The notes beneath the pieces are model-generated. The model did no database searches and had not been told where the DNA came from. It saw only the letters and a program-made list of their open reading frames with translations. Both the position numbers and the translations under genes were made by a program. A DNA stretch of 64,000 bases from Leucoraja erinacea. Lineage: Eukaryota. Positions 1 to 25,249 of this stretch are shown here, piece after piece. Each line of letters starts with the position of its first letter. Positions within the stretch are counted from its first letter, which is position 1. The DNA is taken from NCBI RefSeq assembly GCF_028641065.1, contig NC_073400.1, positions 29,760,001-29,824,000 of the forward strand, given 5' to 3'.

Positions 1-329
1 CTCTGGCAATGGAGGAGGCCCAGGACAGAAAGGTCAGTGTGGGAATGGGAAGGGACATGGACAGGGTTGGCAACCGGGAGATCAAGAATGGTCCCGACCC
101 GAAAAGGACACCTATCCATTTTCTCCAGAGATTCTGCCTGATCCGCCGAGTTACTCCAGCACTTTGTGTCTATCTTTGGTGTAAACCAGCACCTGCAGTT
201 CCTTGCTACACATGATCTATGCGAAACCATGAACCTGTCTGAACAGCGCAAATGACATGTTTTTTATTGTTAAACCTCAGCTTGTGTTACTGCAGTGTGA
301 GTGATCTTTCATCATTAATGTGTCCACAG

Positions 330-653
330 GGTCAAGGGGAATAACTGGACCCGAGGAGGTGAGGGGACAGTTGGGGCAGTCGGTCACTGTGGAATGTCAG
401 TATGGTCAGGAATACACTGACAACAAGAAGCTGTGGAGTAAAGGTGATTCTTACCGGAATTCTTATACTGTGTTTTCTACTGATGACCAACGACGAGGGA
501 GAACATCGATGACTGATGACAAAGAACAACAGATAGTTTTAGTCACCATCGACAAGCTGAAGAAGAGTGATGAAGGACTCTACTGGTGTGTGATAGTAAA
601 GGGAAACGATTCACTCATTGAATCGACCTCCATCTCATTGACGGTTTCTGAAG
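330..653 (+). CDS. Receptor 1 Ig V-set domain exon, copy A (phase 1-1, 324 nt)
   Basis: Acceptor tccacag|, donor GAAG|gtaagt. Encodes GPEEVRGQLGQSVTVECQY...KKLWSK...LKKSDEGLYWC, the CD300/pIgR V-domain pattern with B- and F-strand Cys. Confidence 0.92.
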
Positions 654-3600
654 GTAAGTTGACGATCTCTCCTCACTCTCCCAGATGTGAAAATTCCAGC
701 CTGTGAATTCCCGGCCTCGGTCCTGATGGTGACTCGGTGCCACATCCCCGGGGGGGGGGGTCGCGGTAAGGGGGTTGGGTGGATAACTCACTTACTGGGG
801 TCCCGGCCCGTGGGGCCACACCAAGAGCTCACTGTCGCTGGAGCAGTATGGGGGGGGGGGGGGGGGGGGACTGTCAGACACCAGCCCCACGGAAGGTCCC
901 ATCTACCGGCGGTTCTGTTGCTGACGGCTCATTTCCACGAAGACGATCGCTCCGGGACCAGAACCTCTGCCGCCCCCTCACTGGGGCAGGTGGTGGGAAA
1001 CCCGGGTGGAGATAGGAGTCAATGGGGGAGGGGGCAGGTTAGTAGAAGATACTTAAAATTAGAGAACCAACGTTCAAACCGTTGGGTTGGAAACTACCTG
1101 AGCCCAATATGAGGTGCGGTTCCTCCAATTTGCATGTGGCCTCACTCTGGCAATGGAGGATGCCCAGGACAGAAAGGTCAGTGTGGGAATGGGAAGGGAC
1201 ATGGACAGGGTTGGCAACCGGGAGATCAAGAATGGTCCCGACCCGAAAAAGACACCTATCCATTTTCTCCAGAGATTCTGCCTGATCCGCCGGGTTACTC
1301 CAGCACTTTGTGTCTATCTTTGGTGTAAACCAGCACCTGCAGTTCCTTGCTACACATGATCTATGCGAAACCATGAACCTGTCTGAACAGCGCAAATGAC
1401 ATGTTTTTTATTGTTAAACCTCAGCTTGTGTTGCTGCAGTGTGAGTGATCGTTCATCATTAATGTGTCCACAGGGTCAAGGGGAATAACTGGACCCAAGG
1501 AGGTGAGGGGAGAGTTGGGGCAGTCGGTCACTGTGGAATGTCGGTATGGTCAGGAATACACTGACAACAAGAAGCTATGGAGTAAAGGTTATTATTACAC
1601 ACTATCTGATACCGTGGTTTCTACTGATGACTCACAACAAGGGAGAACATCGATGACTGATAACGAAACAAAACGGATAGTTTCAGTCACCATCGGCAAC
1701 CTGAAGAAGAGTGATGAAGGATACTACTGGTGTGTGATTGGAAAGGGAATATTTTCAAGCAATGAAAAGACCTCCATCTCATTGACGGTTTCTGAAGGTA
1801 CGTTGACGATCTCTCCTCACTCTCCCAGATGTGAACATTCCAGCCTGGGAATTCCCGGCCTCGGTCCTGACGGTGACTCGGTGCCACATCCCCAGGGGTC
1901 GGGGTGAAGGAGGGGGGAGCACATGAGCAGTGTGTGTGTGTGTGTGAGTGTGTGTGTGTGGGGGGGGGCTCATCAATGGGGACCGGCGGTTCTGCTGCTG
2001 GCGGCTCATTTCCCTAAAGACGATCGCTCCGGGTCCAGAACCTCTGCCGCCCCTCACTGGAGCAGGGGAACAGCCAGAACTTCTGGTGCCCCCTCACCCT
2101 CTCCCCCTGCCCGTCACTGTCACACCCACCACACACACAACATCTGAAGAAGGGACCCAACCTTAAACATCGTCTATTTATTCCTTCCACGGATGCTGCC
2201 TGACCTGCTGAGTTACTCCAGCACTATGTGTTTTGCTCAAGATTCCAGCACCTGCAATTCCTTGTGTCTCACAAACGTTAGTGATTCATGAGCTCAGTTT
2301 ATTGTTGTTGTCTGTACTGAGGTACAGGGAAAAGCTTTTACCATGTTTCCAATGAGGGCCAAGTCATTGGGTATTTTCAGGTGGAGATTGACAGGTTCTC
2401 CATTAGTACGGGTGTCAAGCGATATGGGGAGAAGGCAGGAGAATGGGGTTGAGAGGGAGAGATAGGTCAGCCATGATTGAAAGGTGGAATAGACTCAATG
2501 GGCCAAATGGCCTCAATCTGCCCCTATCACTTATGAACTAATGAACTAAGAATCCTCATGAGATGAGTGATATAGACTTTACACTGAGCCACACAAACTG
2601 TACAAGATGAGATACTCAACGGGTCGGGCAGCTTCTGTGGAGAGAGAACGAGAGTTAATGTTTCAGGTAGATACCTCCAACCAAATTGCATTATTTCCAA
2701 TTCAGTCTGCGTAATGAAAATAGTCCATGGATCCTCCCGCTCCCACTTTAAGTTCTTCTCCAGTGTAGAAGACATGTGCCTAACTCTAGCAGCAGGCAGA
2801 TAACACAGCCTGTGGGACTCTGAAGGTCATGAAAGAAGTCTCTGAATGCTTGTGACCAACTGGTGGCATCTTAATGGGTGAGCCTCCGGTCTAGATCAAG
2901 AGGCTTGGTCCATCTATGGTGGCCTCAGAAGGATCTTTGCCCAAATGTCTGGATTGGGATTTGAACCCAGGAATCTCCCCACACAGAGCAAGAGCGTTCC
3001 TGACTGAGGCATCTCCCACACATCACTAAAGTGGCACAGAACGTGACTTCACACATTTTAATGTTCAAAAACTTCATTTTCTTCATCTCCACAAGGGTCT
3101 CAAACAAGCCGCCCAGACATGGTCACCACCACCTCTACAACAATAAGCACAAAGGCTTCCACCACAACCACTCTGACCACCATGCCTCAAGGTACACCAA
3201 CCACCAAGGCAGCAAGTTCTACTGAGGCTTCTAGTTCAACACCTCCAAACAGGTTAGTAACTCGAAGAGTCAACTCAGCCTCACCTGGGAACAAATTAGT
3301 TAAGTTCAGTTCAGTTCAGTTTAAAGATACAGCGTGGAAATGGACCCTTTGGCCCACCGAGTCCGCTCTGAGCAGCGATCACCCCATACACCAGTTCTGT
3401 TCTACACACTAGGGACAATTTACAGAAGTCAATTAACCTACAAACCCGCACGTCTTTGGAATGTGGGAGGAAACCGGAGAACCTGGAAAAAACTTGCGAT
3501 CACAGGGAGAACGTACAAACTCTGTACAGACAGCACTGGTACTCAGGATCGAACCCGGGGCTCCTGCGCTGTGAGGCACTGCGCCACCGTGCCGTCCCTA

Positions 3601-6495
3601 AATGGTCAGCATGGTCTCAATGGGCCAAAGGGCCTGCTCCCATGTCATATCTCTAAACTCTAAACTACTTTATAGTTCCTTAAATACCAATAGAATTATT
3701 CATAATGTTCTAGAATTTAACCTGCACTGCATTCAAGTCTAGATCCACATTTTTACTTTCCGGATCGAAACGCATGGTTCGTTACTGGGGAGGGAATCAG
3801 TCCTATTACCATGAGCTCGTCATTGTTTTTCCTTGTATTTTGCAGGGACGCATTTCCATGGAAGGTTGTTCTATCGATCGCCTTGACAATTGTCTTTCTT
3901 CTGTTCATCGCTGGCATTATCCTATGTGTAAAAATGAGGCAGAGAAAGAAAACTGGTAAGTAGCGATGAATGTACGTAAATATCAAGGGGCCACTCTTGT
4001 TGATTAACAACGATTTGGCCCTTCTCTCTGAGGTGCCTTTCACAAACTCAGACCATTCACCTACCGTGTAACAGCAGGGAAATACACCAAGTGCTGGAGT
4101 AACTCAGCGGGTCAGGCAGCATCTCTGGAGGACATGGACAGGTGACATTTCAAGGCGGCACAGTGGCCAAGCGGGAGAGTTGCTGCCTTACAACACCTGA
4201 AACACGGGTTCGATCCTGACTATGGGTGCTGTCTGTATGGAGTTTGTACGTTCTCCCTGTGAGCGCGTGGGTTTACACCAGAGAGACAGGACCTTTGGCC
4301 CAACTCGTCCTTACTGGCGCCCAAGGTGCTCCCCTACGCTAGTCCCACTTACCTGTGCTGCTCATGCATTGGGCCAACCAAATTGGTAACAACACTGAGA
4401 AGGAGGATTTCCTGGAATGTATACAGGGTGGGTTTTTATACTAATATGTAGAGGAACCGACTAGAGGGCAGTGTCTATTAGACTGGGTATTGTGTAATGA
4501 GGAAGGTTTAGCAATCTTGTTGCGCAAGGTCCCTTGAGCAACAGTGACCATAATATAGTGGAATCCTGCATTAGGATGGAGGGTGACATGGTTAATTCAG
4601 AGACTAGGGTACTATTCATTAAAGGAGACTTTGAAGGTTTGAGGGGAAGAGGCTAGGTTAGACTGGCAAACTATACTTAAAGGGTTGACAGTGGAGATGC
4701 AATGGCAAAGATTTAAAGACCACAAGGATGAACTCCAGAAATTGTTCATCCCTGTCTGGCGAATAAATAAAACTGGGAAGACAGCTCAAACGTAGCTGAC
4801 GAGGGAAGTCAAGGATAGTGTTAAACTCAAGGAAGCCGCATATACATTGGCCAGAAAAAGTGGCACACCAGAGGACTGGGAGAAATTTAGAACTCAACAG
4901 AGGAGGACAAAGGGGTTAATTAAGGGGGGGGGGGGGGGGGGGTGATAAGAGCATGAAAGAAAGCTTGCAGGGAATATAAAAACTGACTTAAAAGTTTATT
5001 TAAGTATGTAAAAAGGAAAAGATTAGTGAAGAATAATGTAGGTCCCTTACAGTCAGAGGCAGGTGGATTTATAATGGGAAACAAGGGAATGACAGAACAG
5101 TTAAACGAGTACTTTGGTTCTGTCTTCACTAAGGAAGACACTAACAATCTCCCGGAAATACTGGGGACCGAGGATCTAGTGGGAGGGAGGAACTGAAGGG
5201 AATCCACACTAGTCAGAAAATGGTGTTAGGTAAACTGTTGGGACTGAAGGCAGATAAATCCCCAGAGCCTGATGGTCTGCATCCCTGAGTACTCAAGGAG
5301 GTGGCCCTAGAAATCGTGGAGTAAAAATTCACGGCGACCAAAATGAGGCCGCGACTAGTTTCCAGAATGCGAGAACTCCTCACGACCATGAAGGCGACTC
5401 CCCGGCAAACACCCGGCAACCCCGGCAACATGTGGCGACTGCATAGTCTCCCTCAGTCGCCTAAAAAGTTGCCTAAGTGGGACAGGCCCATACGTTTCAT
5501 CAAATTTCACCAAGTATGGCATCAATGGTTAAAAAGCAACATTATCCTTTGCGTGTTTGACTTCAATGAAGTCCATATAAGAATTCATTATCATTATATT
5601 TTTCAGGCTCAAATGAACAGAGAATTATGAGTCAGCAAAATCCAGCAGACAGTTTCAAGGTAAGGCAATGCCACAAATGTTGTAGCCCCAGGGAAATAAA
5701 ACAACCTTACTGGAAGTCATCCCTGCAGGGTCCCACATCACATGACATATCGATCACTTGCCCGCTCCTAACATGGCACCTAAATGATCGAGTGCCCATC
5801 CTTGGCCTTTCTCCACTGCCTTGTCTGGGTTCGATTCTGACCACGGGTGCTGTCTGCGTGGAGTTTGCAGGTTTGCAGAGTGTGACCACCTGGGTTTTGT
5901 CTGAATGCTCCAGTTTCCTCCCACACCCCAAAGACGGGCGGATTTCTAAGTGAATTGCCCTCCATAGAACGGCAGATGCTGGAAAAATCGAATGTAGAAA
6001 AAAATGCTGGAGAAACTCAGCAGGTGAGGCAGCATCTATGGAGCGAAGGAATAGGTGATGTTTCGGGTTGGTGACGTCAATGTTCAAGCAGCCCTTGCTT
6101 TCACTCTCTCTCCATCCCTTTCCCCTTCCAAATTCTCCAACCAGTTTTACTGTCTCCGACTACATTTTATCTCTGTACCAACCACTCCCCTGGCATCAGT
6201 CTGAAGAAGGGTCTCGACCCGAAACGTCACCTATTCCTTCGCTCCATAGATGCTGCCTGACCCGCTGAGTTTCTCCAGCATTTCTGTCCACCTTCTGACA
6301 CTATCTTTAAGTAATTATGTTTCTCACTTGACTCCAAAGGAAACCCCTGTCATTTATACCACCGTGACAACCCGTCCTCCAGCTAGCACGGATAATACTT
6401 ACATGAACCTTCAGGATCTGAACACACAAGGACAAGCCAAGAGGCAAGGTGCCGCAGAAGTTGTGTACGCAACAATTCTCACTGATAATAATTAA
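330..6495 (+). CDS. Receptor 1: CD300/pIgR-like (CMRF35-like / skate MDIR-type) inhibitory Ig-superfamily receptor, 5'-partial gene span
   Basis: Six in-frame GT-AG exons: 330-653, 1474-1797, 3096-3252, 3846-3955, 5607-5659, 6340-6495, with phases 1,1,1,2,1,0 all compatible. They encode V-V-mucin stalk-TM-ITIM tail. No leader exon is in the window. Confidence 0.88.
986..1200 (-). mobile_element. Penelope-like element fragment (GIY-YIG C-terminus) at the duplication junction
   Basis: Minus-strand translation PSHSHTDLSVLGILHCQSEATCKLEEPHLILGSGSFQPNGLNV, matching the copy at 21085-21420. Confidence 0.65.
1474..1797 (+). CDS. Receptor 1 Ig V-set domain exon, copy B (phase 1-1, 324 nt)
   Basis: Acceptor tccacag|, donor GAAG|gtacgt. 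Encodes GPKEVRGELGQSVTVECRY...KKLWSK...LKKSDEGYYWC. Lies exactly 1144 nt after copy A. Confidence 0.92.
3096..3252 (+). CDS. Receptor 1 Thr/Ser-rich mucin-like stalk exon
   Basis: Polypyrimidine tract then aag| at 3095 (in-frame alternative cag| at 3116); donor AG|gttagt. Encodes SQTSRPDMVTTTSTTISTKASTTTTLTTMPQGTPTTKAASSTEASSSTPPNR. Confidence 0.8.
3300..3595 (-). mobile_element. tRNA-derived V-SINE (HE1-like); one of more than 15 copies in the window
   Basis: tRNA-like head (ggcacggtggcgcag...gggttcgatcc B-box), conserved core and (taaac)n-type tail. Confidence 0.8.
3846..3955 (+). CDS. Receptor 1 transmembrane exon
   Basis: ttttgcag| ... ACTG|gtaagt. Encodes DAFPWKVVLSIALTIVFLLFIAGIILCVKMRQRKKT: an uncharged hydrophobic span followed by a basic stop-transfer segment. 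This frame is not in the ORF track. Confidence 0.88.
4365..5320 (+). mobile_element. CR1-type LINE internal fragment (endonuclease-RT linker), degenerate
   Basis: Decayed CR1 ORF2 motifs (LNEYFGSVFTKED, DKSPEPDGLHP-VLKEVA) with stops and frameshifts. Confidence 0.75.
5321..5489. mobile_element. Truncated PIF/Harbinger-type MITE end
   Basis: Ends aagtgggacaggccc, the same TIR family as 36726-36934. Confidence 0.5.
5607..5659 (+). CDS. Receptor 1 short cytoplasmic exon
   Basis: tttttcag| ... AAG|gtaagg. Encodes GSNEQRIMSQQNPADSFK; phase 1-0 bridges the TM and terminal exons. Confidence 0.75.
6201..6228 (+). ncRNA. Minimal hammerhead-ribozyme-like motif in a Penelope-derived short repeat
   Basis: CTGAAGA-A-GGGTC(TC)GACCC-GAAAC-GTC: core boxes, a perfect stem II and a GUC triplet. 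Activity untested. Confidence 0.5.
6340..6495 (+). CDS. Receptor 1 terminal exon with ITIM motifs
   Basis: Acceptor ccaaag|. Encodes ETPVIYTTVTT...NTYMNLQDL...AEVVYATILTDNN*, containing VIYTTV and VVYATI ITIM/ITIM-like motifs plus YMNL. Confidence 0.85.
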   Translation, partial: ETPVIYTTVTTRPPASTDNTYMNLQDLNTQGQAKRQGAAEVVYATILTDNN

Positions 6496-10461: not shown

Positions 10462-11890
10462 AAACATTGAAACATAGACAATAGATGCAGGAGTAGGCCA
10501 TTCGGCCCTTTGAGGCTGATCACCCAAAATCAAGTTCAAGGTCACATTTATTGTCACATGCACCAATTAATGTACAGTGATATCAGTACCCCGTTTCATC
10601 TTTTCCCCCATATCCCTTGATTCCCTTAACCTTAGAGCTAAATCTAACTCTCTCTTGAATCCATCCTGTGAATTGGCCTCCATTGCCTTCAGTAGCAGAA
10701 AATTCCACAGATTCACAACTCCCTGGGTGAAAAATATTTCCCTCATCTCCGTCCGAAATGGCCTACCACTTATTTTTAAACTATAACCCCTGGTTCTGGA
10801 CTCCCCCCAACATTGAGAACATTTTTCCTGCATCTCACCTGTCCAATTCTCTAAGAATTTTATATGTTCCTCTAGATAACCTCTCATCCTTCTAACTTCC
10901 AGCGAATACAAGCACAGTCGAACCATTCTTTCATCATATGTCAGTCCCGGCATCCTGGGAATTAACCTGGCGAACATACACTGCACTCACTCAATAGCAA
11001 TAATGTCCTTCCTCAAATTAGGAGTCCAAAACTGGACACAATACTCCAGATGTGGTCTCACCAGGGCCCTGTCCAACTGCAGTAGAACTTCCTTGCTCCA
11101 AAACTCAAATCCTCTCACAATGATGGCAAACATGCCATTGGCTTTCTTCACTGCCTGCTGTACCAGCATGCTTACTTTCAATGACTGATGTACAAGCACA
11201 CCCAGATCTCGTTGCACCTCCCCTTCTCCTAATCTGACACCATTCAGATAATAATCTGCCTTACTGTTCTTGCCACCAAAGTGGTTAACCTCACATTTAT
11301 CTACATTATACTATAACTGCCATGCTTCTGCCCACTAACTCAACCTGTCCAAGTCACCCTGCATCCTCCTCGCAGCTCTCACTGCCACCCAGCTTTGTGT
11401 GATCCGCAAACTTAGTGATGTTACATTTAATTCCCTCGTCTAAATCATTAATATATATTGTAAATAAGTGGGGTCCCAGCACCGAGCCTTGCAGCACCGC
11501 ACTAGTCACTGCCTGCCATTCTGAAAAGAACCCGTTAATTCCTACCCTTAGCTTCCTGTCTGCCAACCAGTTCTCTATCCATGTCAATGCCCTACCCCCA
11601 ATACCATGTGCTCTAATTTTGCACACTAATCTTTTGTGTGGGACCTTGTCAAAGGCTTTTTGAAAGTCTAGATACTCCACATCCACTGGCTCTCCCTTAT
11701 CCATTCTACTTGTTACATCCTCAAAAAATTCCAAAAGATTAGTCAAGCATGATTTCCCCTTCATAAATCCATGCTGACTTTGACCGATCCTGACACTGCA
11801 TTCCAAATGCGCTGCTATAACATCCTTAATAATCGATTCCAGCATCTTCCCCACTACCGGTGTAAGACTAACTGGTCTATAATTCCTCGT
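10462..11890 (-). mobile_element. CR1 LINE 3' portion including reverse transcriptase domain (degenerate)
   Basis: NYRPVSLT...QHGFMKGKSCLTNL...YLDFQKAFDKVPH...QGSVLGP...KFADHTK, and downstream RPHLEYCVQFW; typical CR1 3' tail. Confidence 0.92.
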
Positions 11891-14539
11891 TTTCACATTC
11901 TCGAGTGGTCCCCGTAACCTTTGACTCTCTAGCCCTGAGTCAATCATGCTTACAATCCTCGCCATGTAAAGTTCTGCAATTGGAGCTCGCGTTCCTGGTC
12001 ACACTATGCTTGACACTTTCCCAGCATCGCTGACTTGCAGTAAATGATTGCATTCATTGCACAACCACCATTGTTACTCATACCAATAAAATATTGCCCA
12101 AAACTGCAAACCAAACCCAAACTATCCCATTGAAATTCAGGGCACAGTACTCTCTTTATTACTGAAAGGCCACTCAGCTGACACTGGCATTTCTAAGTTT
12201 GGTTTAGTTTAGAGGAACAGTGGGGGTGGAGGCCGGTTCTTTGGATACTTTCAAGAGAGAGCTAGATAGGGCTCTTAAAGATAGCGGAGTCAGGGGATGT
12301 GGGGAGTTGGCAGGAACGGGGTTCTGATTGGGGATGATCAGCCATGATCACATTGAATGGTGGTGCTGGCTCAAAGCGCCGAATGGCCTACTCCTGTACT
12401 GTCTATTGTCTATTGAAACAGGCCCTTCGGCCCACCAAGTCTGCGGCGACCAGCAATCCCCGCACACTAACACCATCCTACACATCAGGGACAATTTACA
12501 ATTATACCAAGCCCACTAGCCTACACGCCTGCCTGTCTTTGGAGTGAGGGAAGAAACTGGAGATCCTGAAGAAAACCCACACAGGTCACGGGGAGAACGT
12601 ACAAACTCCATACAGACAAGTACCCGTAGTTCGTTTCGTTGTCTCTGTACAAGTACCTGAATCTGAATCTGAGTTAGGATCGAACCCGGGTCTCTGGTGC
12701 TGTAAGGCAGCAACTCTACCACTGTGCCCCAAGATATTAAGATATCTCATGTTATTCCAAATCTGTCTACAGTGAGATACATGAGGACCTTCATACCTGG
12801 TCTACTCCATCCATGGAGGTCAAGATCACATTGACTCTCATCTTCCTAGTCGTAGGATTTGACCATCGTGCAGCACGTCTCGGCAGCATCAGAGAGATTA
12901 TCATGGTAATGTATTAGAATCATAGACTCATAGTTATATAGCACGGAAATAGACCCTTCACTCGTCCATGCTGACCAAAATGCCCCACCTGAGTAGTCCC
13001 ATTTAGCAGCATTTGATCCATATCCCTCTAAACCATTCCTATCCATGTACCTATCCAATTGTCTTTTAAATGTTGTAATAGTAGCTGCCTTAGCTAACTC
13101 CTTTGGCAGCTTGTTCTATATATCCACCACATTCTGAGTGGAAAGCTTGCCCCTCAGGTTCCTATTAAATCCCTCCCCCCTCAATTTAAACTTGTCCTCT
13201 GGATTTTGATTCCCCTTTTATTCTGGGTAAAAGACTCTGTGAATTAAATAGACAACCAGCCTCCACCGCCCTCTGAGGTAGAGAATTCCACAGACTCACC
13301 ACTCTCTGTGAGAAGCTCACCCTATCAATACCTACTGATGATTATATACACCTCTATAAGATCACCTCTTAGCATTCTGTGCTCCAAGGAATAAAGTCCT
13401 AGTTTATACAAATTTAGTTTAGTTTATCATTGACACATGGACCAAGGAACAAGAATTTTTTTTGTTGTTGCATGCTATCCAGTCAGCAAAAGGACTATAG
13501 GTGATTACAATCAAACCATCCACAGTACAGGTACAGGATAAAGGGAAATACTGTAGGTTCAGTGCAAGATAAAGTCCAGTAAAGTCCAATTAAAGATGGT
13601 GCAAGGGTCTCCAATGAGGTAGATGGTAGGTCAGGATCACTCTCTAGTTAGCAATAAGATGGTTCAGTTTCATGATAACATAAGGAAAGAAAGAAACTCC
13701 GTGAATCTGCTTGTGTGCGTTTTCAAACTTCTGTGCCTCTTGCCTGATGAGAGAGGGGAGAAGAGGGAATGGCCAGGGTGAGACTCATCCTCCTTGTAGC
13801 TCAGAACTTCGAGTCCTGGCAAAAATCCTGATAAATCTTCTCAGCACTCTTCCCAACCATGAAGGAATAATTTCAACTGTTTAGGAAGGAACTGCAGATG
13901 CCGGTATAAACCGAAGGTGGACACAAAAAGCCGGAGTAACTCAGCGGGTCAGACAGCATCTCTGGAGACAACCCCGTACGCTAGGACTATCCGACACACT
14001 AGGGACAATCTACAACTTAGCGAAGTCAGATAACCTACAAATCCACACGTCTTTGGATGGGGCGATAAGCCGGAACACCCGGAGAAAATCACGCGGTCAT
14101 GGGGAGAACGTACAAGCCCCGTACAGGCAGCACCCATAGAAACATAGAAACATCAAAAATACCTGCAGGAGTAGGCCATTCGGCCCTTCGAGCCTGCACC
14201 GCCATTCAATATGATCATGGCTGATCATCCAACTCAGTATTCTGCACCTGCCTTCTCTCCATACCACCTGGTCCCTTTGGCCACAAGGGCCACATCTAAC
14301 TCCCTCTTAAACATAGTCACAACTGAACCCAGGCCTCTGGTGCTGTAAGTCCAGCTAGTTGTGAAACAGGAGTCAATGTTCCTTATTCTACATTGGATTG
14401 CAAAGTATTACTTTTAAAAAGTGCATCTCCCAACACTGATCTTCAAGGAGGACAGGATTGGGATATGACCATGCAAGTTGTGGATACCCTCACTGGGAAT
14501 CTGCTACAGTTCAGCTTGTCTTCTGCCCAAACCTCTGCC

Positions 14540-14809: not shown

Positions 14810-17800
14810 GTAAGTTTTTCCACTTAAACCTGAGATGAACAGATTATTGATTAGTGCGGGTGTCAGGGGTTATGGGAGAAAGCAGGAGAATGGAGTTAGG
14901 AGGGAGAGATAGATCAGCCATGATTGAATGGCGGAGTAGACATGATGAGCCGAACAACCTAATTCTGCCCCATTAACTTATGGTCATGGAACCATAGCGT
15001 AGTTATATGTTAACGTGACGATTAGATCTTGTTATTTAAATCAGTGATGATACACTGCTGCTCAGCCAAAGGACCAGGAGCCGAGAAAGGAACCAACTAA
15101 CTTTACATTTTAGCAAGAGTTAAAATGAACTGTGGCAAGAGCACGGGGTTTAGCAGAGGATTTAAGAGACGTTCGGACTGGCACATGCATGTAAGAGGAA
15201 AAAGATACAAAGTGCTGGAGTAACTCAGCAGGTCAGGCAGCATCTCTAGAGAACATGGATATGTGATATTTTGAGCCGGGACCCTTCTTCAGACTGATTA
15301 TGGTGGGGGGGAGGGGGGTGGGGAGAATGCCCCGCTATCTCAATCAGTTTTTAAGAGTCGTTGGCAGGGGCAGATGGATATGCAGGGAATGGAAAGATAT
15401 GGATGATGAGCAGGCAGATATGGGTTGGTCGTGGCATCATGTTCAGCATGGCGATTGAGGGCCAAATGGCCTGTTCCTGTGCTGTGTTGTTCTATGCTTT
15501 TAGTGAAGATGCAGCACTGAAGATGTTTACAGTACAATCTTTCCTCGGATGCTGTCTTTGTGGAGTTTGTCTCCGTCGCCGTATGGGTTTCTTCCGGGAG
15601 CTCGAGTTTCCTCCCACCTCCCATTTCAGGATGAGAGGGACATTGAAACCTAACGAATAGTGAAAGGCCTGGTGATAGAGTGGGTGTGGAGAGGATGTTT
15701 CCACTGGTGGAAGAATCTAGGACCATGGTGCACAGCCTCAGAATAACAGGAAGTTTAGTTTAGTTTGGAGATACAGTGTGGAAACAGGCCCTTCGACCCA
15801 CCGAGTCCATGCTGACCAACGATCCCCGCACACTAGTTCTATCTGACACACTAGGAACGATTTTTACCAAAGCCAATTAACCTACAAACCTCCACGTTTT
15901 TGGAGTGTGGGAGGAAACCGGAGCGTCCGGAGAAAACCCACGCAGGTCACAGGGAGAACGTGCAAACTCCGTACAGACTGCACACGTACCCGGGTCTCTG
16001 GCGCTGTAAGGAAGCACCTCTACCGCTGCGCTACTGTCTTGCACCTGTTACTGTCCTGTACCTGTTAAGGGGGAGATTCTCATATTCTTGGTGAGCAGTA
16101 CGGGTGTCATGGGTTATTGTGTTGAGAGGGAGAGATAGATCAACCATTGGGGCAGACAATGAACTGAATGGTCTAAATGTTTTCCTATAACTTATGAACA
16201 TGAGATTATGTCCGGGGGGGGGAGGGGGTTATGGGAATATTTTGATGTAATTCTGTAACATTTCCAGCATTAAATTTCACCCGACAGGTTCCTTAGCAAA
16301 GCTTCCCTTGATGGTGATAAGAGCTGGCGAGGGAGAAACAGTGACCATAGAATGTCCACACGCTCAGAAAACAGGACCTGTCAGCTGGTGCAAAGTCTAT
16401 TCTCGAGAGGTATGCAATGTAATAGTCCACACTGAGAAAGAAGACAGTAGTGGAAGGATATCAATGAGAAGAGTCAATGGGTCTGTTTTTGTAACAAGTC
16501 AACTTCAGAAGAATGATACAGGAACATACTGGTGTGGAACAATTCAGGCAAATAAAATCCATGTTTCAGATATTGTCATGCTGGATGTTTTCACAGGTAA
16601 GAGATTTTCCGAAGATTTTAAGACCGATAATATGCTTCACAGATAATATACACTTGGACTGCGGTGCCATAATGAGCAGACTGATTGTTATGGAGAGGAG
16701 CTGCCCGTCCTGCTGAGTTACTCCAGCACTTTATACGTAGATTCCAGCATCTGCAGTTCCTTTTGTATACCGATTGTTAGCGGAGTTAACTTACAAAGGT
16801 GTGCAGGAAGGATGCTGGTTTACACCGAAGATAGACACAAAATGCTGGAGTAACTCAGCGGGATGGGCAGCATCTCGGGAGAAATGGAATATGTGACATT
16901 TTGGATCAATAGACAATAGACAATTGGTGGAGGAGTAGGCCATTTGGCCCTTTGTGCCAGCACCGCCATTCAATGTGATCATGGTTGATCATCCCCAATC
17001 AGTACCACGTTCCTGCCTTCTACCCATATCTCTTGACTCCACTATCTTCAAGAGCCCTATCTAGCTGTTTAAGGAATCCAGAGAACCGGCCTCCTCTACC
17101 CTCTGAGGCAGAGAATTCCACAGACTCACCACTCTGTGTGAAAAAGTGTTTCTCATCTCCGTTCTAAATGGCTTACCCCTTATTCTTAAACTGTGGTCCT
17201 TGGTTCTGGACTCCTCCAACATCGGGAACATGTTTCCTGCCTCTTGCGTGTCCAAACCCTTAACAATCTTATATGTTTCAATACGTTTTCCTCTCATCCT
17301 TCTAAATTCCAGATTATACAAGCCCAGCCGCTCCGGTTCGGGGCAATTCCTCAGACTGTCAGTAGGGAGATGGGGAAGAGCTGATGGAACTAGGGTGGAA
17401 GGGTGGAAGGGGGCAAGAGGGCAAGGGGGCAAGGGGGGAGGGGAGTGGAGTGTAATGCCCCTGTCCCACTTAGGAAACCTGAACGGAAACCTCTGGAGAC
17501 TTTGCGCCCCACCCAGGGTTTCCGTGCGGTTCCCGGAGGTTGCAGGTGGTTGCAGGAGGTTGCAGGTAGGGAGACTGACAAAAACCTCCGGGATTTAATG
17601 AGGATGCCTGCCACCCCGTGGCATAGCGGTAGAGTTGCCGCCTTACAGCCCCAGAGACCCGGGTTCGACCCTGACCATGGGTGCTGTCTGTACGGAGTTT
17701 GTACGTTCTCCCCGTGACCTTCGTGGGTTTTCCTCGGGTGCTCCAGTTTCCTCCCACACTCCAAAGTTTGTAGGTTAATTGGCTTCAGTAAAATTATAAC

Positions 17801-20800
17801 TCATCCCTAGTGTGTGTAGGAACGTGTTAATGTGCGGGGATCGCTGGTTGGTGCAGACTAGGTGGACTGTATCTTTAAACCAAAGTAAGGTTTGTGCATC
17901 CTTGGCTCTTCCCTACAAAAGCCAACAGTCAGCATCTCATACCCTTATTTTGTTTTAATTACAGCAGATTCACGGATACTAAACCGTACCACAGTCAAGG
18001 GCGTGATGGGCAATGCCACCACGATACACTGCCGGTACAAGGCCCAATTTAAAGCATATTGGAAATTCTTGTGTAAAGTCGTCTCTGTGAATAGTTGCAG
18101 CATCATAGCGACGCCTCACGACTACAACAGCAGCAAATTGTCAATCAGTGGGAACAAAGTCAACAACTTTGCCATCACGATCAGGCACACTGATGAAGGA
18201 GATGTGGGGGAATATTGGTGTGGGGCCAGGACACCAGTCGACTTTGAGATCTCACAGGTTCAAACCGTGATGTTTAAAGGTATAAATCAACATAAAATTA
18301 CAACGATTCAACATTTATGTAGAAATTCAGCATGCAAACGGTCTTTACTGATATTACCTTCCACGTATCTCTCTCCATTCTTGTAAGTTGTTGGAGTAGA
18401 ATTAGCCCATTCATCCCATCAAGTCGACCCTGCCATTCAATCATGGCCGACCTATATTTCCCTCTCAACCCCATTCTCCTGCCTTCTCCCCATAACCCCT
18501 TACACATGCACTAATCAAGAATCTCTCAATCTCTGCCTTAAAAATATCCATTGACTTGGCCTCCACAGCCTTCTAATTCTTCTCATCTCTCCCAACCACA
18601 TATCTTCGAAGCTTTCCCTAATATTCCTGATATTCACCCGAGTTTTACCTCCTTTCTAAGCTCTGATTGTGGAATGTATTACTAAATATTTCACTTATGT
18701 TTATTACTCTTAGACAGACTTTCTAATCCTCTTGTTAATATACATATTAATTGAATTGAAAGATGCAACATGGAAGCAGGCTCTTCGGCCCATCTAGTCC
18801 ATGCCAACCATCCATCATCCATTCACACTAGATTTATGTTATCCCAATTTTTGCATCTACTCCTTACAGACTAAAGGGCAATTTGCAGCATCTGCATTTC
18901 CTTGAGATTAAGTTATGTTGTGTTGTAATTGATATGAATTGGTATAATATGTTGATTTTAACAACCCACCTCAGGAACGATAACAAAACCAGGGGCACCA
19001 AGCAACAAAGCAAGGTAAGATTTCTGCAGTCATCCTCAATCTAATCATTATTTACCGATTGTTGTTGGTATTGGTTCAATACGTCATGTTTAGTTTAGAG
19101 ATAGAGTGCGGAAACAGGCCCTTCGGCCCACTGAGTCCGTACGGACCAGCGATTTCCGCACACTAACAGTATCCTAAACATACCAGGGACAAGTTACATT
19201 TATACCAAGCCAATATATTTATGCACGACTTTGGAGTGTGGGAGGAAACCGAAGATCTCGGAGAAAACCCACGCGGGTCACGGGGAGAACGTACAAAACT
19301 CCGTACAGACAGCGCCCGTGGTCAGGATCGAACCCGGGTCTCTGGCGCTGCGCCATTATGCCACCCCGTCTCTTATTCTAAACCAGCATCTGCAGTTCCT
19401 CGCATCTCGCTTCCAGTTTCACCCACATTCTAGTTTGTCAACACAAAGAACTGCAGAAGTTGGTGAATACAGAAAAGAATACAAAGTGCTGGAGTAACTC
19501 AACGGGTCAGGCAGCATCGCTGGAGAACATGGATGGGTGACCTTTCAGGTCAAAGCACTTCTTCAGATTCACGTTTCGGGTCGACACCCTTCTTTGATCT
19601 GAAGAAAGGTCTCAACCCGAAACATCACCTGTTCCCATTCTCCAGGGATGCTGCCCTGACCTGCTGAGCTACTCCAGCGCTTTGTGTCCTTCCTCATTCT
19701 GGTTCAATTTACTGTTAGAGATATTGTTCCTTGTCTCATTGAATGTTTCTCAATCCTGTTTTAATAGCGGCACCCCACAGATATGGCACATTATACTTCC
19801 ACTCGTGCTGGGACTATTGGTTGTAATAACGATAGTTCTACTTGTAAAAAAGAGGAAACAGTCACAAACTATCCCTCGTGAAAGTAAGTAGCCAACAAAA
19901 TATTTATTCTACAGTTAAAATGATAATGGAACAATAACTGCGTATGGATTTATTATTGTCGTGCAGTGAAAAAATGTCGTTTTGCATGTCACCCAGTCAA
20001 ATCACACTGAACACGTGTACGTGTAGGAAGGAACTGCAGATGCTGGTTTAAACCGAAGATAGACACAAAAAGCTGGAGTAACTCAACGGGACAGGCAGCA
20101 TCTCTGGTGAGAAGGAATGGGTGATGTTTCGAGTCGGATGTTTCAACCCATCTGAAGAAGGGTCTCGACCCAAAACGTCATCCATTCCTGCTCTCCAGAG
20201 ATGCTGCCTGTCCCGCTGAGTTACTCCAGCTTTTTTGTGTCTATCTATCTGTACACGAGTACATCAGGTTGTGCTTAAAATAATATGATGTTCCAGCGTC
20301 GGAGACAATGCAACTAAACATGTCCAAGGATTGCAAAGAGGCGTAAATTGCAATACATGTCTGTAAATTATCCCCAGTGTGAGGTTTAGTTTAGTTTAGA
20401 TTAGGGATACAGCGTGGAAACAGGCCCTTCGGCCCACTGGGTCTGCACCAACAAGCCATCCACTTACACTAGCACTATCCTATACAAACTAGGGACAATT
20501 TGCTATTTTACCAAGCCTATTAACCTACAGACCTGGAGACGTTTGAAGTGTGGGAGGAAACCGGAGTTCCCAGAGGAAACCCACGTAGGTCACGGGAAGA
20601 ATGTATAAACTCCGTACGGACAGCACCCATAGTTAGGATTGAACCTGGGTTTCTGGGCTGTGTAACCCCTGTGCCACTTAGGAAACCTGAACGGAAACCT
20701 CTGGAGACTTTGCGCCCCACCCAAGGTTTCCGTGCGGTTCCCGGAGGTTTTTGTCAGTCTTCCTACCTGCTTCCACTACCTGCAACCTCCGGCAACCACC

Positions 20801-23800
20801 TGCAACCTCCGGGAACCGCACGGAAGCCTTGGGTGGGGAGCAAAGTCTCCAGAGGTTTCCGTTCCGGTTTCCTAAGTGGGACAGCCAGGGAGGCAGCAAC
20901 TCTACCACTGCGCCACCGTGCATGACTGGTGTACGTGTGATCGCGGGCCGAAGGACTTGTTCCTGCTCTGTATCGCGAAACTAAACATGTTCCGTGCCAG
21001 TGATGGAAGGCCGGGACACCAGAGGCCAACGGGACATATTCCAAATAGTGTCGCTGGATGCTACACGCCCATCTGCAAGATATCGGCGAGACCCAGCGCA
21101 GACTGGGAGATCGTTTCGCTGAACACCTTCGCTCAGTCGGCGTTGACCCACGCAATCTCCCAGTTGCCATTAGATAACTCCCCTTCCCATTCCCACACTG
21201 ACCTTTCTGTCCCGGACCTCCTCCACTGTCAGAGTGAGGCCAAATGCAAATTGGAGGAACAGCGCCTCGTATTTCGTTTGGGCAACTTACACCCCAGTGG
21301 TATGAATATTGATTTCTCTAACTTCAAGTAACGTTTGCATTCCTTCTCTCTTCGTCTCTCCCCCAATCTGGTCATCGCACTAGTTTCACTGTCGTCCTGC
21401 TGAGATTCACTGTCTGTATCAATTAGGCAATAGGTGCAGGAGTAGGCCATTCGGCCCTTCGAGCCAGCACCGCCATTCAATGTGACCATGGCTGATCATC
21501 CCCAATCAATACCCCGTTCCTGCCTTCTCCCCATATACCCAGACTCCGCTATCTTTAAGAGCCCTATCTAACTCTCTCTTGAAAGTATCCAGAGAACCCG
21601 CCTCCACAGCCCTCTGAGGCAGAGAATTCCACAGACTCACAACTCTCTGTGTGAAAAAATGTTTCCTCATCTCCGTTCGAAATGGCTTACTCCTTATGCT
21701 TAAACAGTGGCCCCTGGCCCTGGACTCCCCCAACATCGGGAACATGTTTCCTGCCTCTAGCATTAACAATCTTATATGTTTCAATGAGAAACCCTCTCAT
21801 CCTTATGAACTCCAGAGTGTAAAAGCCTGCCCTTGCATGTCCAATCCCTTAATAATCTTATATGTTTCAATAAGATCCTCTCTCATTATCACTTTCCCCA
21901 CAGCCACCAATGGACCATTGTGGGCTCCACATTTCCTTGATCTGGCTGGCTTTGATCCGTCTTTTTACGAGCCTTTCATGCATTTATTCTGTGTACTTTT
22001 TCATATCTCTCGTTTCCCTCTCCCCTGACTCTCAGTCTGAAGTCAGGTTTCAGTGGTGGGTCTTGAACCCACATCCACGAGCGTCTCCTCAGTGTATGAG
22101 TGTGAAAAGGAAGTGGTACTCGGTTGCTGAGACCGGAAAGTAACATGTGGTTGCAGCTTCTGGTAAAGTGCTCGGTTGGTTAGAGGGGGGAGGGGGGGGG
22201 GGAGGGGGGAGGGGGGAGGGGGGAGCATGAGTGCGGAAGAGAGTGGGGAACTGAGATGTGTGTTGTGGTTCACATCTCATCACAAGCGGAACAAACCTAC
22301 TTCCAACCACATCCATCAAGACGCCCACCATCTCCTTGCTCCCCAGAGCTACAGTATTTATTTTAAAGAGAAACAGTGTGCAACCAGGGCCCTTGGCCCA
22401 CCGAGTCCACACCGACCAACACTCACCCACACACTAGTTCTATCCTACACATTAGGGACAATTTACAGAAGCTAATTCACCGACAAACCTGCACGACTTT
22501 GTAACGTGGGGGGAATAGATACAGCATGGAAACAGGCCATTGACCCATTGAATCCTCGTCAACCAGCGATCACCCCGGTACACGAGCACTATCCTACACA
22601 CCAGGGACAATGTACAATATTACAGGAGTCAATTAACCTACAAACTTGTACGTCTTTGGAGTGTGGGTGGAATCCGGAGCCCCCGTAGAAAACCCACATG
22701 GTTACAGGGAGAACATAGAAAATAGGTGCAGGAGTAGGCCATTCGGCCCTTCGTGCCTGCAACGCCATTCGATATGATCATGGCTGATCATCCAACTCAC
22801 TATCCCATCCCTGCCTTCTCTCCATACCCCCTGAATCCTTTAGCCACAAGGGCCACATCTAACACCCTCGTAAATATGAACTGGCCTCAACTACCTTCTG
22901 TGGCAGAGAATTCCACAGATTCACCACTCTCTGTGTAAAAAACGTATAAACTCCATACAGACAGCGCCCGTAGTCAGGATCGAACTCGGGTTTCTGGCAC
23001 TGTGAGGCAGCAACTCTACCATAGCTTTATGGCCAGCACTGCGGAGCAACATTCAAAGGAGACGTGCGGGGCAAGTGCGGGGAGAATCGGAGACTCCTGG
23101 AACGTGGTGCCACAGGTGGTGGTGGAGGCAGATACGATAGTGGCGTTTACGAGGCTTTTAGATAGGCACATGGATATGCAGGGAATGGATGGATGTGAAC
23201 CACTTGAAGGCAGAGGGGATCAGTTTAACCTGGCACCATGTCGAGGATACACAATGTGGGCCGAAGGGCCAAATCCAGCAAAAGGATTTGAGTATAAGAG
23301 CAAGTAGGTTCTTCTGCAGTTGTACAGGGTCTTGGTGAGACCACAGCTGGATTATTGCGTACAGTTTTGGTCTCGTAATCTGAAGAAATACATTCTTGCC
23401 ATAGAGAGAGTACAGAGAAGGTTCACCAGACTAATTCCTGGGATGTCAGGACTTTCATATGAAGAAAGACTGGATAGACTCGACGTACTCGCTAGAATTT
23501 AGAAGATTGAGGGGGATCTCATAGAAACTTACAAAATTCTTAAGGGGTTGGACAGGCTAGATGCAGGAAGATTGTTCCCAATGTTGGGGAAGATCAGAAG
23601 TAGGGGTCACAGTTTAAAGATAAGGGGGAAGTCTTTTAGGACCGAGATGAGAAAAACATTTTTCACACAGTGAATCTGTGGAATTCTCTGCCACAGAAGG
23701 TAGTTGAGGCCAGTCCATTGGCTATATTTAAGAGGGAATTAGTTGTGGCTAAAGGGATCAGGGGGCATGGAGAGAAGGCAGGTACAGGATACTGAGTTTG

Positions 23801-25249
23801 ATCAGCCATGATCATATTGAATGGCGGTGCAGGCTCGAAGGGCCGAATGGCCTACTCCTGCACCTATTTTCTATGTTTCTATGTTTCCTGTACTGTACAA
23901 TGTTTTCTGCTACTCGGGGAAATATGAGAACTATTATTCTTATTCTAATTTACCTGCTTTTTTGCAGATGGTTGCAAAAACTCAGAAACTCCCACCACAG
24001 CCAAGGTAAGAATGTAGAACTGTAGGAAACCATTCTGTATTATTTCTCTTTACAAATTCTGAACAGGATACATCTCTTCTTTACACGTGTTGAACTGTAG
24101 AGGCTGATTTACAGAACAAGATAGAGGCTGGAGTAGCTCAGCTGGTCGGGCAGCATTTCTGGAGAACATGGACAGGTGACGTTTCAGGTCGGGACCTGTG
24201 ACTCTGAAGCAGGGTCCTGACCGATTCACATTCTCCAGAGATGCTGCCCGACCCGCTGAGTTAATTAAGCACGTTGTGTCCTTTCCTTTAACAAATTACA
24301 ACGCAATACTGCCCTTTGATTCGGTTTCTCTCCCCACGTTTGCTGCCTGACCTGTTGAGCATTTCATAGAAACATAGAAAATAGGTGCAGGAGGAGGCCA
24401 TTCGGCCCTTCGAGCCAGCACCACCATTCATTGCGATCACGGCTGATCGTCCCCAATCAATAACCCGTGCCTGCCTTCTCCCCCATATCCCTTGACTCCA
24501 CTAGCCTCTAGAGCTCTATCTAACTCTCTCTTAAATGCATCCACTGACTTGGCCTCCACTGCCGTCTGTGGCAGGGAATTCCACAAATTCACAACTCGCT
24601 GGGTGAAAAAAAAAATTCTCACCTCAGTCTTAAACTGCCTCCCCTTTATTCTAAGACTGTGGCCCCTGGTTCTGGACTCGCCCAACATTGGGAACATTTC
24701 ATGCAGTTAGTTTATTTGTTTAGAGATACACCGCGGAAACAGGCCCTTCGGCCCACCGAGCCCGTGCCGACCAGCGATTCCCGCACATTAACACGGCCCT
24801 ACACACACCAGGGACAATTTTACATTTACACCAAACCAATTAACATACAAACCTGTACGTCTTTGGAGTGTGGGAGGAAACGGAAGTTCTCAGGGAAAAC
24901 CCGCGCGGCTCATCAGGAGAACGTACAAACTCTGTACAGAGGTCGGGATTGAACCCGGGTCTCTGGCGCTGTGAGGCAGCAACTCTACCGCTGCGCCACC
25001 CTTATTCTCAGATTTCCACAGTATTTTGCTTTTGTACTTAAACATCTAACTGACTTTTTTTCGTTTCAGTCTGAAGGAGAAACTGAAGATACGATTGCAT
25101 ATTCCACCGTGACCATTCAGTCGCCAGCTCAGACCGAAGCAAGCCCTGCAATTTATTCCAATCTTAAGGATCTAAAAGAGCAAAATGAAGACGTCAAGAT
25201 CCATTCGGCAGAATCGGTGGAATATTCTGCTCTGGTGTTCCGATCTTAA
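14746..25249 (+). CDS. Receptor 2: complete CD300/pIgR-like (MDIR-type) two-V-domain inhibitory receptor, 353 aa, gene span
   Basis: Seven GT-AG exons: 14746-14809, 16288-16596, 17965-18279, 18975-19014, 19768-19883, 23968-24005, 25070-25249. They sum to 1062 nt, with an open frame from ATG to TAA. Confidence 0.88.
16288..16596 (+). CDS. Receptor 2 Ig V domain 1 exon
   Basis: gacag| ... ACAG|gtaaga. Encodes GETVTIECP...SWCKVYSREVC...LQKNDTGTYWCG, with the CX7C second disulfide typical of CD300/TREM/pIgR domains. Confidence 0.9.
16910..17335 (-). mobile_element. CR1 LINE 3' fragment
   Basis: LGLYNLEFRRMRG...IETYKI...RVVSLWNSLP plus the CR1 3' UTR. Confidence 0.8.
17456..17593. mobile_element. 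Partial Harbinger-type palindromic MITE
   Basis: TAA followed by tgcccctgtcccacttaggaaacctgaacgg..., near-identical to the left arm of 20666-20886. Confidence 0.6.
17615..17885 (+). mobile_element. tRNA-derived V-SINE (HE1-like)
   Basis: Same consensus. Confidence 0.8.
17965..18279 (+). CDS. Receptor 2 Ig V domain 2 exon
   Basis: NAGNAG acceptor (cagcag, start 17965 or 17968), donor AAAG|gtataa. Encodes GNATTIHCRY...KFLCKVVSVNSC...DEGDVGEYWCG. Confidence 0.88.
18975..19014 (+). CDS. Receptor 2 short stalk exon
   Basis: ctcag| ... CAAG|gtaaga. Encodes GTITKPGAPSNKA; phase 1-2, as in the receptor 1 stalk exon. Confidence 0.75.
19768..19883 (+). CDS. Receptor 2 transmembrane exon
   Basis: ttaatag| ... 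GAAA|gtaagt. Encodes GTPQIWHIILPLVLGLLVVITIVLLVKKRKQSQTIPRE, with no charged residue in the hydrophobic core. Confidence 0.88.
20666..20886. mobile_element. Palindromic MITE with ~80-bp inverted arms, inserted in a SINE
   Basis: ccacttaggaaacctgaacggaaacctctggagactttgc... pairs with ...gcaaagtctccagaggtttccgttccggtttcctaagtgg. Confidence 0.75.
21085..21420 (+). mobile_element. Penelope-like element fragment (GIY-YIG endonuclease C-terminal half)
   Basis: IGETQRRLGDRFAEHLRSV, then after a frameshift LEEQRLVFRLGNLHPSGMNIDFSNFK*. Confidence 0.75.
21423..21890 (-). mobile_element. CR1 LINE 3' fragment
   Basis: FRTEMRKHFFTQRVVSLWNSLP plus the 3' UTR. Confidence 0.8.
23270..23887 (+). mobile_element. 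CR1 LINE 3' fragment
   Basis: LYRVLVRPQLDYCVQFWS...ERVQRRFTRLIPG and a (tttctatg)n tail. Confidence 0.85.
23968..24005 (+). CDS. Receptor 2 short cytoplasmic exon
   Basis: tttttgcag| ... AAG|gtaaga. Encodes NGCKNSETPTTAK; phase 1-0. Confidence 0.75.
24705..25000 (-). mobile_element. tRNA-derived V-SINE (HE1-like)
   Basis: Same consensus. Confidence 0.8.
25070..25249 (+). CDS. Receptor 2 terminal exon with ITIM motifs
   Basis: ttttcgtttcag|. Encodes SEGETEDTIAYSTVT...AIYSNLKDL...AESVEYSALVFRS*, containing IAYSTV and VEYSAL ITIMs plus YSNL. Confidence 0.88.
   Translation, partial: SEGETEDTIAYSTVTIQSPAQTEASPAIYSNLKDLKEQNEDVKIHSAESVEYSALVFRS

Follow-up and report, generated by a model that had tools for sequence, protein, structure and literature searches.

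Two adjacent V exons of a little skate CD300/pIgR-like receptor gene: old domain types and a probable recent exchange between their units

How can two neighbouring exons of one gene differ strongly in their coding sequence while the intron that precedes each of them is nearly the same? The question is raised by a stretch of 64,000 nucleotides from the little skate, Leucoraja erinacea (contig NC_073400.1, positions 29,760,001 to 29,824,000 of the forward strand; the whole stretch is called the window here), which begins within a tandem pair of immunoglobulin (Ig) V-set exons. We refer to them as V1 and V2, and to the two types of V domain that they represent, described below, as alpha and beta:

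330 to 653, plus strand: V1, third V-set exon of its gene, encoding domain 3 of isoform X1 and domain 2 of isoform X2; phase 1-1, AG/GT splice sites, alpha (distal) type, Pfam V-set E = 4.7e-15.
1474 to 1797, plus strand: V2, fourth and membrane-proximal V-set exon; phase 1-1, beta type, Pfam V-set E = 3.8e-13.

The translations of V1 and V2 were found, identical and consecutive, within two L. erinacea RefSeq isoforms named "polymeric immunoglobulin receptor-like": XP_055510916 (P0181, isoform X1), with 622 amino acids and four V domains, and XP_055510917 (P0155, isoform X2), with 514 amino acids and three V domains. V1 and V2 are therefore domains 3 and 4 of an already automatically annotated CD300/pIgR-like receptor gene with four V exons and immunoreceptor tyrosine-based inhibitory motifs (ITIMs). 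As the best explanation of their divergence, and a rather probable one, we propose two old domain exons that were partly homogenised by a recent non-allelic exchange, likely from V2 to V1.

Divergence profile and selection on the two exons

The V1 and V2 units were compared ungapped at an offset of 1144 nucleotides (nt). All the counts that an earlier, preliminary description of this locus had given were reproduced: 5 differences in 329 positions of the upstream intron (1-329; 1.5%), 41 in 324 positions of the exon (330-653 against 1474-1797, both 324 nt; 12.7%), 4 in the first 95 nt of the downstream intron, and 30 differing codons, 27 with a replacement and 3 purely synonymous. The contrast between exon and upstream intron was highly significant (Fisher P = 7e-9). 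The downstream flank 654-760 held 7 differences in all.

A change-point scan confined the excess to the block 446-624, where 37 of 179 positions differ (20.7%) compared with 16 of 581 elsewhere (2.75%). The likelihood-ratio test (LRT) statistic was 55.6, while the maximum in 200 permutations reached 22.6. Both ends of the exon resemble an intron in their similarity, with three differences in the first 103 nt and none in the last 29 nt. The units can accordingly be divided as follows:

1 to 432, plus strand: putatively homogenised tract of the V1 unit, comprising the upstream intron and 103 nt at the start of the exon; 8 of 432 positions differ from 1145-1576; its 5' limit lies beyond the window start.
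1145 to 1576, plus strand: matching tract of the V2 unit from the same comparison, the probable donor; the direction is read from beta-type residues in the N-terminal part of V1.
433 to 624, plus strand: divergent core of V1, from the end of strand C to the start of strand G; 38 of 192 positions differ; best change-point segment 446-624; synonymous divergence (dS) 0.143, nonsynonymous divergence (dN) 0.250.
1577 to 1768, plus strand: divergent core of V2, same comparison.
654 to 990, plus strand: downstream intron of V1; aligns with 1798-2066 in two blocks only, with mismatches at 7/107 and 7/85 positions.

Divergence of the flanking introns is 1.5% on the upstream side and amounts to 7.3% in the aligned blocks of the downstream side. 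Past position 760 the units align in just one more block (905-990 with 1982-2066), and poly-G and (TG)n indels lie between the blocks. Poly-G runs, the longest with about 20 G, and a (TG)n microsatellite occur at 749-780, 850-869 and 1931-1968, the exact points where the downstream-intron alignment ends.

Because non-coding divergence is uneven between the upstream and downstream sides (P = 0.001), a single duplication date does not fit the two units.

The preliminary description offered, as its first option, that the exon was recently duplicated in tandem and that diversifying selection then acted strongly on ligand-binding loops. The 27 replacement against 3 synonymous codons and a dN/dS of 1.97 speak for such a history, as do a core dN far above intron divergence and a preference of the changes for the C-C', D-E and F-G regions. 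However, the pairwise dN/dS proposed as a check did not significantly exceed 1, neither over the whole exon (Nei-Gojobori dN 0.158, dS 0.080, P = 0.23) nor over the divergent core (codons 34-98, ratio 1.76, P = 0.39), and synonymous divergence of the core was raised as well. The latter was higher than the divergence of the upstream intron (P = 0.026 on three silent codons only, P = 4e-5 by the Nei-Gojobori estimate) and did not differ from that of the downstream intron. Since its synonymous divergence lies above the upstream-intron rate, the core looks older than the upstream intron, not merely faster. This corrects an attractive reading: a replacement excess beside near-identical introns is, taken alone, no evidence of runaway positive selection.

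The position of the changes within the domain bears on the same option. The domain keeps the V-set hallmarks C22, W35, Y84 and C86, and its AlphaFold model (predicted local distance difference test score, pLDDT, 93) comprises the strands A', B, C, C', D, E, F and G. The loop motifs in C-C', C''-D, D-E and F-G are as earlier described, and the reported clustering in loops stands to the extent that 16 of the 27 changed residues fall in loops (C-C', C''-D, D-E, E-F and F-G), but 11 lie in strands and none in the B-C loop, which is like complementarity-determining region 1 (CDR1). On the model, the changed loops belong to both ends of the domain, together with strand ends. With changed residues at both domain ends and an unaltered CDR1-like loop, the model gives no evident sign of one hypervariable face for binding, which also counts against selection on ligand-binding loops.

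Two domain types shared with a paralog and with Amblyraja

The tree and the alignment comprised 17 V domains of the subfamily, of about 108 residues each, from proteins of Leucoraja, Amblyraja radiata and Rhinoraja longicauda. V1 was placed in a clade (support 99/97) with domains 1 and 2 of its own gene, domain 1 of the paralog XP_055510911 (P0001) and domain 1 of the Amblyraja protein. V2 stood outside this clade, next to domain 2 of P0001 and near domain 2 of Amblyraja. Forcing V1 and V2 to be sisters cost 33 log-likelihood units and was rejected by the approximately unbiased (AU) test (P = 0.009), also when the core columns were used alone (P = 0.010). P0001, a paralog from the same chromosome record, combines three V domains with the same stalk; its transmembrane (TM) segment contains an Arg, which suggests an activating partner of the receptor encoded here.

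At 21 of the 27 differing residues both states are seen in other domains, and at 19 of the 27 they are seen outside this gene; private states are limited to Q13, F48, Q/S53, E64, K66 and G74. The shift of the N-glycosylation sequon from NDS in the F-G loop of V1 to NET in the D-E loop of V2, which was seen as earlier described, is also a feature of the domain types: NDS in the F-G loop is a mark of the Leucoraja alpha domains and N-x-T in the D-E loop a mark of most others.

Taken from these protein comparisons, we conclude that two old domain lineages are most plausibly represented, alpha for the distal domains and beta for the membrane-proximal domain, and that their split appears to predate the divergence of Leucoraja and Amblyraja. 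Most V1/V2 differences would have been inherited from these two older lineages, which are common to the paralog and Amblyraja. In skates, pIgR-like genes of different genera have retained both a distal and a proximal type of V domain. A recent duplication with strong diversifying selection is difficult to reconcile with the rejected sister placement of V1 and V2 and with the presence of both states in other domains, another genus included. We therefore consider this first option very unlikely.

The order of alpha followed by beta is common to two Leucoraja genes (the present one and P0001) and to the Amblyraja protein P0157. This order is relevant to the concern that the tandem pair might be an assembly artefact, in which two haplotypes or two loci of one exon were placed one behind the other. 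Such an error would be favoured by a window that starts inside the repeat, by short units that are partly 98.5% identical and by the poly-G and (TG)n tracts in the introns. Against it stands the recurrence of the order in P0001 and P0157, which come from other loci or assemblies. The units moreover differ by indels and in their downstream flank, and beyond the second copy the sequence is unique and includes the stalk exon. Words sampled from the stretch were also matched in sequencing runs of several studies. We regard an assembly artefact as extremely unlikely.

Mosaic structure of V1 and the proposed exchange

V1 is closest to V2 over its first 38 residues (35/38 identical). In the core, it shares only 37 of 61 residues with V2, which is about as far as any compared domain, as opposed to 45-46 of 61 with alpha domains. 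In the protein comparisons the core falls with an Amblyraja domain of its type, and the N-terminal part of V1 within the locus. Two residues of this part illustrate it: Gly6 is shared by V1 and the six Leucoraja and Amblyraja domains that are not in the alpha clade, where the four other alpha domains have Glu, and Thr29 occurs in V1 and V2 alone among the 17 aligned domains. With the breakpoint set according to the DNA profile, triplet tests gave P-values of 0.013 (with Amblyraja domain 1), 0.06 and 0.075.

We propose the following course of events. The alpha and beta lineages would predate a recent non-allelic exchange between the adjacent 1.1-kb units, either a gene conversion or the product of an unequal crossover, most likely directed from the V2 unit to the V1 unit. 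The upstream intron of V2, including a short interspersed nuclear element (SINE)-like repeat, and the first ~100 nt of the exon would have been copied into the V1 unit. The tract would have ended within the exon, so that the core from C-C' to F-G kept its alpha or beta identity; selection may or may not have kept the cores distinct. The replacement excess between V1 and V2 would then show where a conversion tract ends on a background of two old domain types. The locus would be a small-scale example of concerted evolution whose reach ends within one exon of an immune receptor with several domains. Introns that appear recently homogenised next to exon cores that appear old are also the outcome that the preliminary description itself had set against its proposal of positive selection.

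Several points weigh against this explanation. Two of the three triplet tests were only marginal, and a pairwise homoplasy index (PHI)-type recombination test on the domain proteins of Leucoraja and Amblyraja was not significant (P = 0.3-0.7). All comparisons beyond V1/V2 were made at the protein level, and the tandem arrangement of V1 and V2 is taken from the assembly. Further, dN exceeds dS in the core (1.76), and at 0.25 it is also higher than downstream-intron divergence. Because of these two excesses, and because the cores of all alpha domains are only ~75% alike, some adaptive divergence may have been added on top of the mosaic.

The second option of the preliminary description was an exon-restricted conversion from a larger pool of paralogs. 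In a specific form, a recent duplication of the whole beta unit would have been followed by a conversion in which an alpha-type exon elsewhere served as donor and replaced the core of the upstream copy. This history predicts the same mosaic profile with an alpha-type core in V1, and runs of adjacent substitutions at 455-460 and 606-609 look as if they had been pasted in. A recent donor would, however, be expected to be nearly identical to the V1 core, and no sampled alpha exon comes near it, the best matches (46/61 residues) being in the same gene and in P0001. Nor would an overwritten core predict the higher divergence of the downstream intron compared to the upstream intron, unless the tract covered the downstream intron too. 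The part of the option that involves an exchange between exon units is retained in our proposal, but the larger pool was not found: the protein databases contained 7 V exons of the subfamily, in just two L. erinacea genes. We consider an overwriting of the V1 core unlikely, and prefer the partial homogenisation of two old exons.

Profiles of this kind have been described for other duplicated genes. According to a review (PMC3924837, reviewing Teshima and Innan 2008), duplicates under gene conversion can show a peak of divergence, as in exon 5 of the red/green opsins and in RHCE/RHD; in these tandem duplicates, divergence of the flanking introns is low and peaks sharply in one exon, which is read as conversion being kept out of functionally distinct sites. 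V1 and V2 show the same profile of low flanks and a local peak, with the change-point statistic far above its permutation maximum. They differ from the opsin and RH pairs in that they lie next to each other as exons of a single gene and encode successive domains, and their profile also fits a single recent tract, not only ongoing conversion.

The receptor, its family and the surrounding window

Downstream of V2, the remaining coding exons of the receptor gene were located in the window:

3096 to 3252, plus strand: Ser/Thr-rich stalk exon, by tblastn to P0155.
3846 to 3955, plus strand: TM exon, with an uncharged TM segment followed by a basic stop-transfer stretch, by hydrophobicity scan and a 100% tblastn match to P0155.
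5607 to 5659, plus strand: cytoplasmic exon, by tblastn to P0155 and an exon check.
6340 to 6495, plus strand: last coding exon, stop codon included, encoding VIYTTV and VVYATI (both ITIM-like) as well as YMNL, by motif scan and a 100% tblastn match to P0155.

Joining the window exons reproduced the C-terminal 373 residues of P0155. The boundaries of the stalk and TM exons were fixed within one base by reading the sequence, and the translation is the same either way. A local scan of the 64-kb window detected neither a leader exon nor an activating-type TM exon; the leader and the first two V exons of the gene lie upstream of the window. The product has the architecture of a type I receptor: a stalk rich in Ser and Thr, an uncharged TM segment and two ITIMs. 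By these features it is predicted to be an inhibitory receptor of the CD300/PIGRL type. Isoforms X1 and X2 differ by one whole V domain and one leader residue (H/L), which points to an alternative leader or to a skipped V exon of symmetric phase.

The preliminary description had assigned V1 and V2 to the Ig V-set and to an innate-type receptor of a cartilaginous fish, and this was borne out by the RefSeq identity in the little skate and by the matches to the Pfam V-set family PF07686 (56.1 and 50.0 bits, with a cut-off of 26). In a sequence search of solved structures, pIgR was matched with E = 7e-32 over its whole five-domain chain, domain 5 being the best single match (conditional E = 3.6e-15), and CLM-1/CD300LF with E = 1e-17; the closest solved structures were pIgR D5/D1 and CD300LF. 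HMMER and word searches retrieved RefSeq proteins of skates and rays with names such as 'polymeric immunoglobulin receptor-like' and 'CMRF35-like molecule 3'. Bird pIgR proteins are 24-28% identical to P0001 over about 70% of its length.

The similarity of V1 and V2 to CD300/pIgR-like receptors extends to the type I layout with stalk, TM segment and ITIM tail and to the existence of a paralog with a charged (Arg) TM segment, P0001. In contrast to CD300, which has one V domain, the skate receptors have three or four in tandem. The second intradomain disulfide of CD300 and pIgR is lacking in V1 and V2, which read W-S-K with Ser at the Cys site and have no partner Cys in C'; both extra cysteines are present in ray relatives and in a second gene of the window. 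True pIgR binds and transcytoses polymeric Ig with J chain and has a long tail that carries sorting signals. The tail of the skate receptor is short and bears ITIMs, and because of this tail a pIgR-like transcytosis is unlikely.

Modular domain immune-type receptors (MDIR) carry one to six domains drawn from several domain subfamilies. In the clearnose skate, MDIR is described as a multigene family of activating and inhibitory receptors with Ig domains that resemble CD300, TREM and pIgR (Cannon et al. 2006, Immunogenetics 58:362, as cited in PMC3031540). This description agrees with the present proteins, as far as the cited summary of the family goes, in the number of domains (2 to 4 across P0001, P0155, P0181, P0157, P0153 and P0154) and in the occurrence of ITIM and charged-TM forms; the two are likened by family description, and no Raja eglanteria MDIR was among the protein search matches. 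Both the receptor family and the evolutionary pattern are of known kinds. The distinction between alpha and beta domains could help to direct ligand studies on the CD300/MDIR family of cartilaginous fish, about which little is known.

Homogenisation of V-exon units also took other forms in these animals. All eight V domains of the R. longicauda proteins P0153 and P0154 form a single species-specific clade, which indicates concerted evolution. P0153 holds both uncharged and Arg-bearing TM segments, and may be a merged gene model. In the little skate, a nearby pIgR-like gene (XP_055510910/909, P0017/P0180) encodes four almost identical V domains. Judged by this near-identity, and in contrast to V1/V2, the gene would have undergone either full homogenisation or a very recent expansion of its exon unit. 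On account of the single Rhinoraja clade and the four near-identical domains of XP_055510909/910, homogenisation of V-exon units seems to recur in this cluster.

As a more general conjecture, which we put forward tentatively and hold to be doubtful, the ectodomains of skate CD300/pIgR-like (MDIR-type) receptors might be built from a few old V types. Neighbouring exon units, and likewise inhibitory and activating paralogs, would constantly re-assort these types and convert patches of one another, with selection keeping the loop cores distinct and the rest being homogenised. If this were true, it would amount to a germline regime of exon-level diversification for an innate receptor, and the partial mosaics of Leucoraja and the full homogenisation in Rhinoraja would be two states of one process.

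The window contains a second CD300-like gene (16288-25249, plus strand) with two phase-1 V exons at about 16288-16597 and 17965-18280, which keep the extra Cys pair. A tail open reading frame (ORF) of this gene at 24971-25249 carries the motifs IAYSTV, AIYSNL and VEYSAL. The best match of the gene is an uncharacterised protein of Stegostoma tigrinum (P0164). Between the two receptor genes lies an ORF of 203 amino acids (11354-11965, minus strand) that resembles, by eye, a reverse-transcriptase fragment of the long interspersed nuclear element (LINE) type.

The repeat in the upstream introns has the following positions:

84 to 212, and again 1228 to 1356, no strand assigned: SINE-like repeat in the upstream intron of both units, with about 25 other copies (72-85% identical) spread over the two strands of the window.

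A second repeat spans the junction of the two units (1050-1198) and recurs at 21181-21330 on the minus strand.

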